Source: Saccostrea cucullata (taxonomy: Eukaryota). Taken from it: DNA of 64,000 bases. The position numbers were made by a program, and so were the translations under genes. Location of the stretch: positions 1-64,000 of the forward strand of contig NW_026923439.1 of NCBI RefSeq assembly GCF_032062105.1. The letters are read 5' to 3'. Positions 39,907-57,211 of the stretch are shown here, piece by piece. The notes under the pieces were generated by a model. That model saw only the letters and a program-made list of their open reading frames with translations. It was not told the origin of the DNA and did not search any database. The first letter of the stretch is position 1. Every line of letters starts with the position of its first letter.

Positions 39907-40969
39907 ATGTTGTTTCTAAAGATATCCATAGCACATGAATCCTTTGTCCAAAGGTCATAGGGATGGTGGAGGTCAGAAAATTATGACGAGACCAAATTGC
40001 TTGACTCGAAAATAAATATTGTATAAATATTCACATCAAATATTTTATAAGATTTTTCTGACAACATCAAGAACTGCGAACACCTAGTGGCACTTTGTTA
40101 GAACTGTTGAATGTAAACCATATTTTGGGGTATGTACAAGCTTTCTATTATTCTTTTATCATCTCGATGGAGGATTTTTACAATATTTAAAATGGTATAA
40201 ATTTTGTATTTAAATACTTGAAATACCCCGCTAGTTATTTCTTTGTTTAAAAAAGGTGTTTGTTTTATTGCTGCATTGTTAAAATATTAAAATTTGCTTA
40301 TCATGCATTTTATCTTGCAGGAAACTATGTACTTCATAGCCATGATCAATCAAGTACCTAGACAAACCGTTCTATCTGAAATGATATTGTCCTACGGACC
40401 TGGTTTAAATAAAATCCACAAATGTTTCCTTTCTGTATGTATATACGGAAGTAGAAAAATCAAGTCATTCAGCTGGTATAGAATAAACATTTTCTTTTGT
40501 TAAATCGAATTAACAGAAATATAATTAAAATAAAACCATGACTGAAGAATGTTGTTCAATGTTGGACAAAGCAGTATTCTGGATATACAAACAAACTGAA
40601 ACAATTATCATACATACAAATATCAGAATCTGCGAGTTGATAATTATTAAAACAACATTCAAGTATGAACATGCAATTATTGCAGGTTTTTTTTTCATCC
40701 TTTGACTTATCTTGGCCATTGGCGTTGTTATCAAGTTTATGAAATTTATCAGATCATATCTTAAAAATTGAAAATCTTTAATAAATATTGTTAAAAACAA
40801 TTTTTAAACATCCGGAAGATTAAATAATCCAGAAATTGTACAGAGGATGTCAGATCAATGTTTATACCATCTAACACTTTATATCCAACACATCATTCGG
40901 CTTCCATAAAAACAGTCCTAAATATCACTTCATTTCGATTAATCCATGGGACCTCTGTTATTGAAGTAT

Positions 40970-41134
40970 TTAACGTTTCTTCAATTTGTCTATTTTATGT
41001 CCTCCTTTTAATCCTACATAGACACCGACAGCAAACCCTGCTAGAAATGTGAACGTAACGATCCAAAACAACGCCTTCCCTTTAACCTCTATCTCCAGAC
41101 CATCTTCTCCAATCTCAATGTCCAAGTCTGACAT
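40970..41134 (-). CDS. 54-aa single-pass membrane microprotein with a glycine zipper (not in the ORF track)
   Basis: Hand translation: MSDLDIEIGEDGLEIEVKGKALFWIVTFTFLAGFAVGVYVGLKGGHKIDKLKKR. Purine at -3, acidic N-terminus, TM helix with GxxxGxxxG, basic C-tail. Confidence 0.65.
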   Translation of the reverse strand: MSDLDIEIGEDGLEIEVKGKALFWIVTFTFLAGFAVGVYVGLKGGHKIDKLKKR

Positions 41135-41689
41135 TTCTATGTCACGGGTCTAGTCTCACGAGTGACGATCAATGTAACAACATGCAACCACTTGACTAAA
41201 CGTGACTATAAGTGATACCGGTTAAGGTGATTGCTTATGTTTGTAAAGGGGAACAAGGCAGTGGGTTACAAAGCTAACATCGAGAAATGCTATATTTTAT
41301 CATGTAGAGCTAAGAAGTATATAATTACTATAGGACTTAGGTAAACATAATGTTATAGATCGAGATATTAAGGTCCGCAGGTACGTATAGCAGGCCCCTA
41401 TACATATAGGAACTCCCCTGATGAGTTTACCCGATATATATACTAATCAAAAAGAATTTTTTAAAAAGCCTTTTACGCTTCTTTTGAATTTTAAATGTCT
41501 AATATAAAAAAAGTCCTTGTTTTACCCTGGGAGATCCAAAACAAGTGTTAGTTCAAAAAGTAAAATAGGAGGTGTACAGTAGCATTATGTAATAAAGAAT
41601 CTGTTAAAGTACATGTATGTATATCATTCAATTTTATTCAGTGGTATAGGAGGAGTTGCGGATAAGAGACGCTAGCATGGGTACCCCTC

Positions 41690-42255: not shown

Positions 42256-42790
42256 AGGTCATATTATCTATACTGAACGGTCGGATATACATGTCAATAA
42301 GAGACATAAATAAAATTGACTGACGCAAAAATACTTTTTTGTACCATTTATAAGGACTATGAAAGGGAAATGTGATATCGGCCCGGTTTACTATAACATA
42401 TGTGTTCAAGCATTTTTGTCAAGTAAAATAGATAAATTACATGTAATCTATTTAGACAAGAGACAACCTAGAAAAACACCATTCTGAAACAAAGCACCTA
42501 TGATTGTGGTGAGCTTGACCCTGAGTGGCTGCGCGACACACGTTTGTTGGCTCAGGTGAGCTAAAACAGTATCACTACTGTATATACGGTAACTAAGCGA
42601 AAAAATCACAAGAGTTAAACCAAGTAACTCTTGGTAATAAGGCGAGCAGGTTTATTATTATTTTTTTTTTTTTACAACAAAATCAATGTAGAATGGCGTA
42701 AGTTAGGCCTAACAATAAATTTTCAGTAGGCTTGGTAATAGTCAACTTTTGATTCATCAAAACAATATTAATTTCACCGTAAGTATGCAA

Positions 42791-42862
42791 TCCTCGGTAG
42801 TATAGTGGTAAGTATCCCCGCCTGTCACGCGGGAGACCGGGGTTCGATTCCCCGCCGGGGAG
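42791..42862 (+). tRNA. trnD-GUC: tRNA-Asp (anticodon GTC)
   Basis: TCCTCGG/CCGGGGA acceptor stem, A-box TAGTATAGTGG, anticodon arm CCCGC-CTGTCAC-GCGGG, B-box GGTTCGATTCC, discriminator G. Confidence 0.97.
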
Positions 42863-43491: not shown

Positions 43492-43683
43492 ATGGCCAGA
43501 CTCCGCGAAGTATCTGGCACCACGGCCCTGGTTTTGGCGGGTCTGACGTTTGCCTTGGGGTTCTACCTGGGTTACAAGGCAAAAGCTTATCGCCTTCGAT
43601 ATCTCCATAATAAAAGAGATCGTCTGATGAATAAACTGAACAAAGCAACAGAGGACATTCAGTATACAATGAACAATATTTGA
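43492..43683 (+). CDS. MTLN: Mitoregulin-like mitochondrial microprotein (63 aa)
   Basis: EVSGTTALVLAGLTFALGFYLGYKAKAYRLRYLHNKRDRLMNKL aligns without gaps to human mitoregulin as I recall it (DVSERTLQLSVLVAFASGVLLGWQANRLRRRYLDWRKRRLQDKL), 17/44 identical. Strong Kozak (A at -3, G at +4), acceptor at 43464, upstream non-coding exon ending at 43076 (G|gtaagt). Confidence 0.8.
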   Translation: MARLREVSGTTALVLAGLTFALGFYLGYKAKAYRLRYLHNKRDRLMNKLNKATEDIQYTMNNI

Positions 43684-45257: not shown

Positions 45258-46730
45258 TTAATATTTTATTTGCTCGTAAAGTGACAAAAGTTCTGTGAAA
45301 GACTGAAATCTGTAGTAAGTTAAAAATGGGTACAAAATTAGCTGAATGACTCGGTAGAAGCGGTCCTTTGCCATGCCGATATCCTGCAGACCCACCAATG
45401 AGTTCACCATCCAGTTGGACATGTTGATGCTGGATAGAAGCAGTATCAGAAGCTTGGTGTTCTGTGAAATGTCAAGGTCGTTTCCTAGGTCCTCAAATCT
45501 GTGACCCACGATGATGAAAATCGTTTGATAGAGGACTCCTACACTATTGGAGACTCTATAGACGATGAAATATGGTCCGCGCTCCTCTACAGCAATGGCA
45601 GATACACTGAAAGCAATGACTGCCATAGAACTCACTGTTAACGCCACCTCGTTGAAGTTGACATCTTTGGTGTGTAGGACAAAGTTCAGCTTACGGAAAA
45701 AGTTGTGATTTATCGCTAAAATTAACATTAGAACAAACAATTTTATAGAACATACGAAACCTATGGTTATATTTTGCAAATTAGAACTAGGTGCAATTGT
45801 AGTCCATGGCAGAATAACTAGTGTTGAGATATTCCAGACAGCTGCAGTGACCAGAAATAGACAGATCTTGATTTTCGGGAAGGAAAAGACTGGCAGCGAT
45901 TTTTGTAAAATGCTCGTCGAATGGCTACAGTTACCAGACAGATGAGAATCACGAGGATTTTTAATTAAACCTGGAATAGTTTTTCTTTCGGTCAGTCCAA
46001 AAACGAAGGATGTTGCCAGAACTGCAAACTCTAGGGTCACGGGCAGCCTGAAAGGCATGGTGATTTTGGCGAATTTTTTAATTGAGTCGCTCTGCACATA
46101 TGAACAGTTTACCTGGTAAGTCCCATTCTCATCAGGGTTTAACAACAAATCTCTGTTTTCTGAAATTCTGAACAAAATAGACCTTATCCAGTCCACTAGG
46201 TTTCCTATCGCAATGAGTGACATGAGATATTTCATTTTGGCGGAACATATGAATGTATACCGACTTGTACATGTCATAAAAATGACTTGCACAAGAACAA
46301 ATACAATGTTCACGGAGCCATGAACCAAAAGGGAGTATAACAGCTCATCTTGTACTGCATATTTACAGTGTAAGTAAAATATAATGTAAATGAACGAGAA
46401 GGTACACTTTACAATACCAAAGAACCACAGAAAGCCCATGTTTACTTTTGTCACTGTCGGGATACGCGAATCCTTGCACCCTATCCATTCTTCTTGTTGG
46501 CAGAACACCGACACAATGAGATATACGGTGACGAGCAGACCCAAGAAGCAAGTCAATATGGAGATGATGTCCAACACAAGATTTGCGGTGACATCACCCA
46601 TGCCTCTCTCCTCGTAGGTAAAAATGGCCACCGAAAGAATCCCAAGAATTGCAGAGAACATGAGCACGGATCCTACATCTCCGTCAAATAGTTCTCCATA
46701 ACGGTTTCTTCGCAGCTGATGCATCTCCAT
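45258..46730 (-). CDS. Otopetrin-family proton channel, intronless and divergent
   Basis: 490-aa ORF with about 12 hydrophobic segments in two halves. Motifs VFVLVQVIF, GNLVDW, PVTLEF, YQTIFI, NMSNW and YPFLTYYRFQS correspond to the otopetrin Q, N-x3-W, P-x2-IEY and P-x2-IFYRFHS signatures. Confidence 0.85.
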   Translation of the reverse strand: MEMHQLRRNRYGELFDGDVGSVLMFSAILGILSVAIFTYEERGMGDVTANLVLDIISILTCFLGLLVTVYLIVSVFCQQEEWIGCKDSRIPTVTKVNMGFLWFFGIVKCTFSFIYIIFYLHCKYAVQDELLYSLLVHGSVNIVFVLVQVIFMTCTSRYTFICSAKMKYLMSLIAIGNLVDWIRSILFRISENRDLLLNPDENGTYQVNCSYVQSDSIKKFAKITMPFRLPVTLEFAVLATSFVFGLTERKTIPGLIKNPRDSHLSGNCSHSTSILQKSLPVFSFPKIKICLFLVTAAVWNISTLVILPWTTIAPSSNLQNITIGFVCSIKLFVLMLILAINHNFFRKLNFVLHTKDVNFNEVALTVSSMAVIAFSVSAIAVEERGPYFIVYRVSNSVGVLYQTIFIIVGHRFEDLGNDLDISQNTKLLILLLSSINMSNWMVNSLVGLQDIGMAKDRFYRVIQLILYPFLTYYRFQSFTELLSLYEQIKY

Positions 46731-52084: not shown

Positions 52085-55000
52085 ATGGATGATAAATCAA
52101 ATAGACTACAATTAGTTCAACTAAAATTGATCAATGTTTTGGATTTTCTATCGAATTACCTCCCCCTTGTAAACTGTCATTCTAATGACTTTATTCTTAA
52201 CAATCATTGGCACACATTTTTGTGTGAGTCCATCAGAAAAGAACTTGAAACCCTCAGTACTAGTGAACTTGTATCAGTCTTGAGTCATACAATTGATAAC
52301 AAGAAATTAAGCCAACAGGAGACTTGTAGAGAAGATGGATCTGATCCAAGTTCTTGGAAATTCAAATGTGAATATCTGGATACAACAAAGACAGAAAGTG
52401 AAATTAGTGAAATTTATTCACCTGAGATGCAGAAATTGCCCCCTCACTGGGTTCATGGAAACTTGTATTCATTTTTATATGATGCACAAAGGAACAGTCT
52501 TCAAAACTTGGGCATTCTTTCACAGATTGAAAATCTTTTTGAAGATGTAAATGCTGCAAATGAAAACTCTGTGTTTATTTCCACATTTATGAATCAGAAA
52601 AAGACTCATGAAGTAGAGGTAATGGGAGAACTGTGTTTTAAGCTGACTAAGAAATATGACACTAGTGTGGTAAGTAAACCTGCAGGATATATTTCATTAT
52701 TTTGAAATTGTTAGTTTATAAATATGGTATTGCCAGTATCAACAACTTGAATAATGATGCACCTAACTAGAACAAATCATCTTATTGTAAAAAAAAAATG
52801 AATTTATGTGAAATTTAAATTTAACATAAATCAAAGGAGAAATCAAACTGAAAATTTTGAAAAATAAATGAAAGGGTAACTTATGTTTTTTGTGTATTTT
52901 TAGGTAGTAGATCTAGGGAGTGGTAAAGGATACCTCAGTACACACCTGGCATTCCAGCATAAACTGTGTGTGATTGGTGTAGATGCCCAAAACATCAACA
53001 CAAAAGGGGCCACAAAGAGGGCAGACATACTATCCCGGCAGTGGGAGGGAATAACTCGAAATGAAGTTTTACGAGCTGATAAAGTTGAGCCAGGAAAGAT
53101 AGGTAAAAAGAAGAAAAAACTTATGAAGAAGTTAAATCTAGAAAAAGACATGCAGCAACAAAAGGACTTCAAAAAATCTGATGATTTGCATTGTGGGATA
53201 TCTGATGAACTCCTTACAGACTTCTCCGGTTTATTTGATGATTCTGGGGAAATTGGTGATGGTAAAATAAGTGGAGATTTCAAAGATAGTTTACCAGTAA
53301 CTTGTGATTCCTCAGACCTGGCAGAGAAAATTCAAAATAGTGCGACCATCAAAAACAACTGTAAAGGAGGAGAGGGGAAAGAACATCTAAGCAAATCTCA
53401 AACAGAAGTCAAAACTAATATAGAATGTGAGCATAATTCTAATAGTAGTAATTTTTCTCATAAAAAAGTCAACACAAAATCTTCAACACTAAAAGCCAAC
53501 CACTTTCCTGTTACCATGTATATACACACAGACTCCAACCTTAGTGACATAGTAAACAAAGCTTTGGCACAGAATTCAGCACACACAAAAGGCAAGGGAG
53601 CATCATCCACAGATTTCTGTGAAATTTCTTCAACTGAACAGGGCAAATCAGTCTGCTGTGATAGAAGTGATCAGGAATGGGACAGGAAAAACTGTGTTCT
53701 GCTGACAGGGCTCCATACTTGTGGTGGTCTGGGTTCCAATATGTTAAGACTGTTTGTTGAGTCAGAAGATGCCAAAGTCCTGTGTAATGTAGCTTGTTGT
53801 TATCACCTCATGAGTGAGGAATTTGTTGCCAGTCCATTTAAAGAGAAAGGTACATCTAGCTTAACATTAATATAAGTGCATTCAGGAAAAAGTGCATTTT
53901 ATATGTGTCAGTTTGATAAAGATTCAATCATATAGCCATGACTAGTGAAAAGATGATGTTTTGATTTTATTTTTATCTATTGGTATATAATTATTGTAAA
54001 AGAAATATAACCTATGTTTCTAACATCATTTTGTAGAAGACATGATTGAGGCTCCAGGCTTTCCTCTTAGTGACTTTTTAAAGAGAAACAAAGTTGGTAT
54101 CGGGAGACAAGCCAGAAATCTGGCCTCTCAGTCCGTCAACAGACGCGCCCAGGACGAGGAGGTATATCTCTCATAACCCAGTCTTGGGAACTCCATTACA
54201 TTGTGTATTTTATATATTAAATTGTCTTCTTATGTTTTGTTTGCGTAGGTGCTTGCTAAACAGTTTCCCAGAATGTTGCTGCAAGTTATACTTCGGGATC
54301 AGCTGGGATATGTGAGAAGTGATTGGAAAGGGCTGAGAAAGTTAGACCAGAAATGCAAGGGGATGTATGAATACGTTACAAAGGCATTTGTCAAGCTAGG
54401 AGTTCCTACAGGAGGAGTAAGTTTTTAGCTTAAATAAGTTGTGTTGCTGAAACATTATGACCAAGATGGTAAATACCAACAACTGTTTTACCCTGACATT
54501 TGACAATTATCGGGCCATGACCCAAAGATATAACTTTCACCTTTATCGTAAATAAAATTTTATGCCTAGTTTACTTGAAAGTTATGGTAAAAAGTGATGA
54601 AGCTGTAGAAAAGAGCTGACAAAATTTGTTCTGAATGGCATGTAAATAGAAAAGTGTTCTTTCACACATGTAATCAGATGGGTAAAAACTATAAACAAAT
54701 TTATATTGATAGATCACTGAGGAGCTTATCGATTCCTATTGTGAAAAGTACAAAGACCAGAAGAAGAAGTTTGCTGCATTCTTTCAGTTGAAGACTGCCC
54801 TGGCTCCCTGCATTGAAGCTGTCATTCTGTTGGACAGGCTTTGTTTTCTTCTCGAGCAGGTATATTATCATTTTGTTTGGATGCAGAAACAGATTTATCT
54901 CCCTTTACGCAGCTTCAGTTCTTGCATCACACTGGTTTATGTTCAATGCATTCATAAAGATTTCATTGTAGATTAAAAAAAAAACGCCAAAAAAACTCCA

Positions 55001-56060: not shown

Positions 56061-57211
56061 ATGACTTCATCCCCAGGTGCCCCAGATCCAGCCTTCACCT
56101 TGAGGGGGAGTGGCAGTCCCATCACCTGTCTGAAATTTACTGACCAGGCAGATCAGAAGCTTTATTCCGGTTCTCAGGAAGGAACTATCCATATCTGGGA
56201 CATGAAGACCCATAGACCACTAGAAACACTGGCTGCCCACCCTGGACAGTCCGTTCTGTGGATTGAGTTCATCAGTGGTGATGAGATGGTGACGTTTGGA
56301 AGAAATGGCATTGCTAATATATGGAAAGCTGCAGAAGCAAGTTGGACAATTACAGGTTAAATGATTATTTAATAACTTCTTTGTTAGTGTTAGACATTTT
56401 ACGCAGCTATGTTGTTACTTTGCATTAAACTACATGTAAAAGGTAATTTCCACATACCAAGATATATCGGTATACTGGCTACTTATACATCTATTCTGTA
56501 TATATTTTGTAATTTATTTGTGTAAGAAATTTGCCAAGTACCTTATTATTTCAAATGTTTCATATTGATCTAATTCTAGGTAACATTCAGACATCTGTGA
56601 TGGGGTTTTGTCCTGGTGCACTGCTGAAACAGGACAATTTACTGGCTCTTCCCAGTGAGGAAACATCAGCAGTTGATTTATACGATATCAAAACTCGGGA
56701 GAAAGTTGGACATTTCCTTGATTCTGGCTGTAAACATGGAATGACTATGAGTATCAAGTCAATTTCCGACACATCTCAATTTTTTGTGGGATATGAAGAT
56801 GGTTCCATTGGTTTATGGGATTGCAAACATTCTGGAATCCTGGACAAGGCTAAATTCTTTGAGGAATGTGTGATGTGTCTTGACTACAGCTCTGGTGCTA
56901 ATCTTGGAATCTGTGGATCTCCCAGTAAGACGTTATCGACCTGGAACATTACTGATAACCAGATTAACAAGGGAACAAGTTATGAAGTGAAAAACCCTGG
57001 ATTTAACGACGTAAAAATTCGTAATGACCAAAAAATATTAGCCACTGCCGGTTGGGATCACCAAGTACGAGTGTTTGGTGTGAAGAAATTCAAGCCTTTA
57101 GCTGTATTGTCCTACCACAAGGACAGCATTCAATGTCTGGCCTTCTCAAAAGACAATATGTTAGCCTGTGGTTCTAAGGATCAACATATCAGTCTCTGGA
57201 AACTTTACTAA
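56061..57211 (+). CDS. GNB1L: WD40 protein GNB1L (ASTRA/Asa1-like)
   Basis: Exons 56061-56355 and 56580-57211. N-terminal PDPAFTLRG; C-terminal KIRNDQKILATAGWDHQVRVF...PLAVLSYH...GSKDQHISLWKLY. Confidence 0.93.

Follow-up and report, generated by a model that had tools for sequence, protein, structure and literature searches.

Evidence for an unannotated glycine-zipper microprotein gene beside a mitoregulin-family gene in Saccostrea cucullata

The minus-strand open reading frame at 40970-41134 of the window (the whole stretch of 64,000 nucleotides of Saccostrea cucullata DNA analysed here) is almost certainly a genuine, unannotated, single-exon protein-coding smORF. The explanation to which we lean, by a small margin over even chances, is that its product, a member of a family genomically linked to mitoregulin (MTLN), would be a bitopic microprotein, that this family would have been duplicated from an MTLN-like gene and that the protein would act as a modulator or partner of MTLN assemblies. 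A first-pass annotation, made from the letters of the sequence, had pointed to a minus-strand frame of 54 residues at this position and had given its translation, both of which we reproduced. Its proposal that the frame is a real gene missing from the annotation is borne out by purifying selection, by kept ORF ends, by 30 unannotated clusters of related sequences and by RNA-derived contigs from Crassostrea.

The reading frame, its locus and its coding status

The frame opens with an ATG, runs for 54 codons and ends in TAA. An in-frame TAG is located six codons upstream, so that no start is possible ahead of the ATG at 41134. The window contains zero N bases between 40000 and 44000. The features of the gene, of its product and of the immediate neighbourhood are as follows:

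40970-41134, minus strand: complete CDS of a B-type family member (ORF call, conservation confined to the CDS, dN/dS of about 0.08, family)
41150-41152, minus strand: upstream in-frame TAG (read from the sequence; open frame of 59 codons)
41075-41128, minus strand: residues 3-20, acidic N-terminal segment (27-sequence alignment)
41009-41074, minus strand: residues 21-42, predicted TM helix with an FxxGxxxG(xxxG) glycine zipper comprising F30, G33 and G37 (27-sequence alignment, AF2, alignment to the MTLN TM region)
40973-41008, minus strand: residues 43-54, short basic C-terminal tail, no RxRYL (translation, 27-sequence alignment)
40777-40782, minus strand: ATTAAA, candidate polyadenylation signal 187 nt past the stop (pattern match only)
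42791-42862, plus strand: tRNA-Asp(GTC), between the genes of the 54-residue and the 63-residue microprotein
43492-43683, plus strand: gene of the mitoregulin family encoding 63 residues, probable parent or paralogue of the 54-residue gene (PF22002, adjacency in four lineages)

Judged by its match to Pfam family PF22002 (E 6.9e-10, 39.1 bits, cutoff 27), the 63-residue ORF is a bona fide MTLN-family ORF. The tRNA gene between the two microprotein genes keeps its position in Crassostrea, where bases 1-30 of contigs L009 and L010 match 42785-42814 of the window by blastn; because the same tRNA is present in these contigs, tRNA-Asp belongs to the conserved oyster locus. Both contigs end in the tRNA, just upstream of a further family copy of the A type (see below). 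At a distance of 1.6 kb beyond the MTLN gene, an uninterrupted ORF of 490 codons (45258-46730, minus strand) encodes a multi-pass membrane protein in which no Pfam family was found at E <= 0.001. Large open exons at 52970-53875 and 56531-57211 (both plus strand) carry a Methyltransf_32 domain (E 9.5e-11) and WD40 repeats, respectively, and are ordinary neighbours.

A word-based protein search led to two unnamed clusters at 80% identity, derived from assemblies of public sequencing runs, and 15 contigs were retrieved. The Crassostrea orthologues of the 54-residue protein are 70-80% identical to it. When the 15 contigs were compared with the window by blastn, only 40974-41135 aligned (78%), apart from the 30-nt match to the tRNA. 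The codon-level conservation in other oysters to which the first-pass annotation had looked is evident: differences between the CDS of the window and its orthologues are distributed over the three codon positions as 5/4/29 (or 5/4/27), corresponding to a pS of about 0.6, a pN of about 0.10 and a dN/dS of 0.075-0.088. Seven distinct CDS alleles of the Crassostrea type differ from each other by synonymous changes only. Between the lineages L028 and L038 a dN/dS of 0.087 was determined for the B copy; for the A copy pN amounts to 0.078 and pS is saturated, and in both copies dN/dS does not exceed about 0.09. A similarity that is bounded by the CDS and biased by codon position indicates a translated frame rather than a non-coding element or a gene on the opposite strand.

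An exact 54-residue orthologue, P0003, is present in 129 index blocks and is listed in EukProt, as a complete ORF, under transcript GAHX01003147.1 of the Mikrocytos mackini transcriptome. Since this parasite was isolated from tissue of Crassostrea gigas and reads of the host are a known contaminant (PMC10245619), we read GAHX01003147.1 as a C. gigas transcript. Part of the contigs can likewise be assigned to Crassostrea, because the related MTLN cluster includes a RefSeq protein of Crassostrea virginica. Transcription of the smORF is indicated indirectly, and for Crassostrea only.

There is little chance that the ORF is part of something larger, be it one exon of a gene for a longer protein or a uORF or dORF of another transcript. 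Such a reading would find its support in contig L013 (bases 1-1346), in which a complete spliced coding sequence of glutaredoxin-3 (GLRX3) is joined to the smORF region and thus stands upstream of the ORF. The join is located 78 nt upstream of the smORF ATG, and a canonical splice acceptor is absent from it. In the genome of the window, however, GLRX3 comprises at least 8 exons and lies on a different contig, from which it follows that L013 is RNA-derived and chimeric, probably as an assembly or template-switch chimera; the smORF mRNA may begin at its join point. In addition, the in-frame stop upstream of the ATG, the conservation of start and stop in all lineages and the end of conservation at the borders of the CDS speak against a larger unit. 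Even less credible is a chance ORF or a conserved but untranslated non-coding element, for although the frame comprises only 54 codons in an AT-rich genome and has no protein database entry, the dN/dS of about 0.08, the location of 29 of the 38 differences at third codon positions, the purely synonymous differences among the Crassostrea alleles and the single ORF architecture common to 30 family clusters are all at variance with it.

The microprotein family

An exact look-up of the 54-residue protein matched no protein collection. An exhaustive HMM search over 1.84 billion representatives yielded 8 proteins, and a profile search with 13 members yielded 30 clusters, so that the family comprises at least 30 sequence clusters; no cluster of the 30 is named, carries a Pfam domain or corresponds to an NCBI or UniRef entry. 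A protein-atlas search with the 54-residue protein returned only bacterial hypothetical clusters, all of them below 0.9, and nothing on peptides of this family or on oyster smORFs was found in the literature searched. The family is probably previously undescribed; it occurs in oysters and in other lineages, which are probably bivalves as well, as we assume. The family illustrates how deeply conserved genes can escape every reference annotation merely by being shorter than the length cut-offs.

In the alignment of 27 family sequences (A5) G12, F30 and G33 are invariant and E7, G9, G19 and G37 nearly so. The layout is constant and consists of two glycine-closed hydrophobic/acidic units, a TM helix with an F-x2-G-x3-G pattern and a tail of 12-17 residues rich in Lys and Arg. 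The ORF of the window, which scores 93.4 bits against the family HMM, has all four of the N-terminal family residues (E7, G9, G12 and G19). In its segment 3-20 hydrophobic and acidic residues alternate in two repeats, and a glycine turn ends each repeat. A duplicated acidic motif had already been noticed in the first-pass annotation, together with the lack of an RxRYL tail; both are visible in the ORF and both extend to all 27 members. The constancy of the two-repeat acidic motif across the alignment makes it a conserved family feature. We infer that the acidic N-terminus may fold as a beta-hairpin; AF2 assigned low confidence to residues 3-20 and did not model a hairpin. AF2 predicts the monomer as a single long helix, of which only the TM region is modelled with confidence (pLDDT about 90). 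The protein carries a net charge of about -5 on the N-terminal side of the helix and about +5 on the C-terminal side, and no cleavable presequence was detected in the 54 residues.

In several lineages the gene is present as a tandem pair, the A type being proximal to the promoter and the B type distal, and the ORF of the window is of the B type. A-type copies are present in Crassostrea (L017, L009) and in L028/L038; the Crassostrea copies are located at L017:96-260 and L009:47-304. A second, A-type copy was found neither in the window nor in the whole genome, which leaves one family gene here. The A copy of one Crassostrea lineage, with a dN/dS of 0.43, indels and loss of the original start, suggests that this copy is being lost in oysters. 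The single copies L027:6001-6150 and L040:6001-6162 differ by 10.5 non-synonymous versus 3.5 synonymous changes and by a 4-residue indel within the zipper. In this pair of close genomes (dS about 0.1) the dN/dS of the family gene is near 1, and selection on it appears to be relaxed or diversifying. Taken together, the relaxed A copy and the L027/L040 pair indicate that the family is not uniformly constrained. The 90% cluster of P0037, a 54-residue protein of the A type, also contains an adenylosuccinate synthetase of 440 residues (P0039), which we rejected as a clustering artefact.

Relationship to MTLN and a possible role

Both the family HMM and the MTLN HMM were run over all loci long enough to tell, namely the window and three other lineages. 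An MTLN homologue was found 0.2-2.4 kb from the family gene in every such lineage, head-to-head in three of them and in direct tandem in one. Three arrangements can be distinguished:

Window: family gene (minus), tRNA-Asp, MTLN (plus); head-to-head, gap of 2.36 kb
L028 and L038: MTLN (minus), A copy (plus), B copy (plus); head-to-head, gap of 0.9-1.4 kb
L027, L040 and L041: MTLN (plus), family gene (plus); direct tandem, gap of 224 nt

The MTLN proteins of the linked lineages share just 34-44% identity, and the adjacency must therefore be old. The idea of an inverted duplicate, put forward in the first-pass annotation, agrees with the head-to-head arrangement in the window but not with the L027 lineage, where the two genes follow each other directly at a distance of 224 nt. 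Spacers between tandem ORFs measure 178-224 nt, and three of the four short spacers that were checked contain neither AATAAA nor ATTAAA; such spacers would be compatible, in a weak sense, with co-transcription.

The ungapped match of 8 identical residues in 22, which pairs ORF residues 16-37 with MTLN residues 6-27 and from which the assumption of a relationship had started, was recovered by BLASTP with 17.3 bits. For a comparison of profiles by hhalign the MTLN alignment comprised 5 sequences, as a word search with the MTLN ORF gave just two close orthologues. The family profile of 13 members matched it with 82% probability (E 1e-5, score 29.7) and that of 27 members with 90% probability (E 1.5e-6, score 33.3), in both cases in the same register as the 22-residue match. 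With the columns of the TM block or TM core shuffled, the real score was attained in 0/150, 0/150, 1/300, 0/300 and 0/400 trials (the last value for the TM core), and a reversed MTLN profile scored 13.6. By these comparisons the similarity of the family to MTLN in the TM region appears to exceed composition.

Some family members bridge the two families. One of them, P0085, aligns to the MTLN of the window with 28.9 bits (BLASTP, E 2e-7) and 14 of 28 residues identical, with one 4-residue gap. The MTLN of the L027 lineage (L027:5561-5776) carries an N-terminal extension of 20 residues with alternating hydrophobic and acidic residues, and its extension and helix align with the adjacent family protein (BLASTP, 14/37, E 0.002); this MTLN may be an intermediate form between both families. 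Of the window's 1116 six-frame open pieces, the MTLN ORF was the best non-self match of the family HMM (12.6 bits, the next piece 5.7), and the 54-residue ORF was that of the MTLN HMM, more narrowly, with 9.4 bits against 8.4 for the next. The two ORFs are hence reciprocal best non-self matches in the window. Matches between species are at least as good as those within a genome, and this speaks against gene conversion as the source of the similarity.

The strongest competitor, to which we grant a substantial though clearly smaller probability, is that the family arose independently and came to stand beside MTLN through co-regulation or a joint function, in which case the two would share a promoter region or, in some lineages, a bicistronic transcript. 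The likeness of the TM segments would then be a convergence on FxxGxxxG. This pattern is a general packing motif of TM helices, so that convergence is possible, and the aligned region comprises only 22-28 residues, for which two registers can be chosen owing to the 4-residue indel. An independent origin is favoured by the entirely different soluble ends of the two proteins and by the failure of all 27 family members to match the Pfam MTLN model (PF22002, gathering cutoff 27 bits) at E <= 10. Several other small TM families (DUF4535, YohP, ATPase_gene1, LapA and PIGBOS1-like) gave E values of 0.002-0.5 with the 27 members. It is further favoured by two helices that equal the cross-match of the families: PetL of cytochrome b6f reaches 14.1 bits with the family HMM versus 9.6-13.9 bits for MTLN, and FXYD2 reaches 14 bits with the MTLN HMM versus 15.5 bits or less for family members. 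On these scores the similarity at HMM level ranks with the upper end of the noise that natural glycine-zipper helices produce. Against an independent origin speak, on the other hand, the hhalign probability of 90% in one consistent register and 0/400 TM-core shuffles, the bridging member at E 2e-7, the similarity in the L027 lineage that extends N-terminally past the helix and the adjacency itself, tandem adjacency being the usual signature of duplication.

We conclude that common ancestry of the family and MTLN is somewhat likely, though unproven. The first-pass view of a diverged MTLN paralogue that kept its TM face and changed its ends is strengthened by the register at 82-90%, the shuffles, the bridging sequences and the adjacency, and it is weakened by the 0/27 result with the Pfam model and by the level of PetL and FXYD2. 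The same annotation had named a similarity to MTLN no better than that to random glycine-zipper TM helices as a ground for giving up the idea; by HMM, the similarity is indeed no better than that of the best natural helices of this kind in 177,635 PDB sequences. PetL and FXYD2 are, however, the extremes of this large database, whereas MTLN was a single candidate chosen beforehand.

If the slightly favoured explanation by duplication holds, a local duplication of an MTLN-like gene would have founded the family. The helix with its packing face would have been retained in it, the long basic helix with RxRYL would have disappeared, and the acidic N-terminus would have been preserved or elaborated. 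From the charges of -5 and +5 around the helix the positive-inside rule predicts an N-out/C-in orientation, the same as for MTLN, and the charge dipole would orient the protein accordingly in the membrane. Residues F30, G33 and G37 lie on one face of the helix, a classic packing surface. Through this glycine zipper the helices would oligomerise, be it among themselves or together with MTLN, and the protein would be a small, membrane-embedded modulator or partner that works with or parallel to assemblies of the MTLN type. Topology and oligomerisation of the 54-residue protein are predictions and its mitochondrial location is a guess by association; the topology of an N-exo signal anchor in the ER is equally compatible with the sequence.

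A more far-reaching proposal, which we regard as doubtful, is that MTLN and the family constitute an ancient two-component, in some lineages three-component, module of co-expressed microproteins that would form a hetero-oligomeric membrane complex. Co-expression would then keep the genes adjacent, as bicistronic units where they stand in tandem 180-225 nt apart, while in the other arrangements one divergent control region would serve both. Within the complex, one subunit would place its acidic N-terminus on one face of the membrane and the other its basic C-terminal helix on the opposite face.

Here an invertebrate MTLN is accompanied by a conserved neighbour, probably its duplicate, whose soluble end differs and whose copy number is one or two according to lineage. 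The pair can serve as a natural experiment to tell whether the helix face or the tails matter in microproteins of the MTLN type. As a candidate partner, the neighbour could also help to resolve the disputed mechanism of MTLN.

Comparison with known systems

MTLN (also MOXI or MPM, PF22002) is the closest of the systems considered. Like the family it is small (about 55-63 residues) and encoded by a single coding exon, its single TM helix, close to the N-terminus, bears an F..G...G face of small residues in the same register, and positive charge follows C-terminally of the helix; the genes are adjacent in four lineages. According to one review, which cites Linzer 2024, MTLN self-oligomerises (PMC11920140), and this would fit the shared packing face. 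The differences concern mainly the ends. MTLN has a basic C-terminal helix of 30 residues with RxRYL, a motif present in 5/5 MTLN homologues and in 0/27 family members, whereas the family has a tail of 12-17 residues instead. Conversely, the conserved acidic two-repeat N-terminus of the family is absent from most MTLN homologues, and the family helix is one turn longer than that of MTLN, as seen from the 4-residue indel. In reviews, mitoregulin is described as restricted to vertebrates and without paralogues (PMC11920140).

STMP1 (DUF4535, PF15054) is likewise small and single-pass, with an FLxGFxxG-like zipper, and a resemblance to microproteins of the STMP1 type had been noted at first. This resemblance did not hold: the 54-residue ORF scores 11.3 bits with PF15054 (cutoff 28.3, E 0.28) over residues 27-40 only, the best E value among the 27 members is 0.01, and the match is no better than those to YohP, ATPase_gene1 and LapA. 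A search of the oyster's own genome for STMP1 with PF15054 yielded nothing beyond a fragment of 21.5 bits. That the family consists of diverged relatives of STMP1 rather than of MTLN is very improbable and was rejected, since DUF4535, although the commonest weak match (5 of 27 members, over 14 zipper residues), stays far under its cutoff and is confined to the zipper, since the helix of STMP1 is situated at the extreme N-terminus without an acidic leader whereas 20 acidic-segment residues precede that of the family, and since there is no genomic link or synteny.

Drosophila sarcolamban and tarsal-less/pri are polycistronic or tandem smORF genes. The same-strand arrays with 180-225 nt between the frames (A and B copies in L028/L038, MTLN and the family gene in L027/L040) resemble such genes; the gene of the window differs from them in that it stands alone and faces away from MTLN. 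PetL of cytochrome b6f and FXYD2, finally, show a comparable HMM similarity over the helix, but share neither flanks nor linkage nor taxonomic range with the family. By the curated criteria the family is placed outside both PF22002 and PF15054, and the most fitting description of it is a new, MTLN-linked type of predicted single-pass glycine-zipper microprotein.
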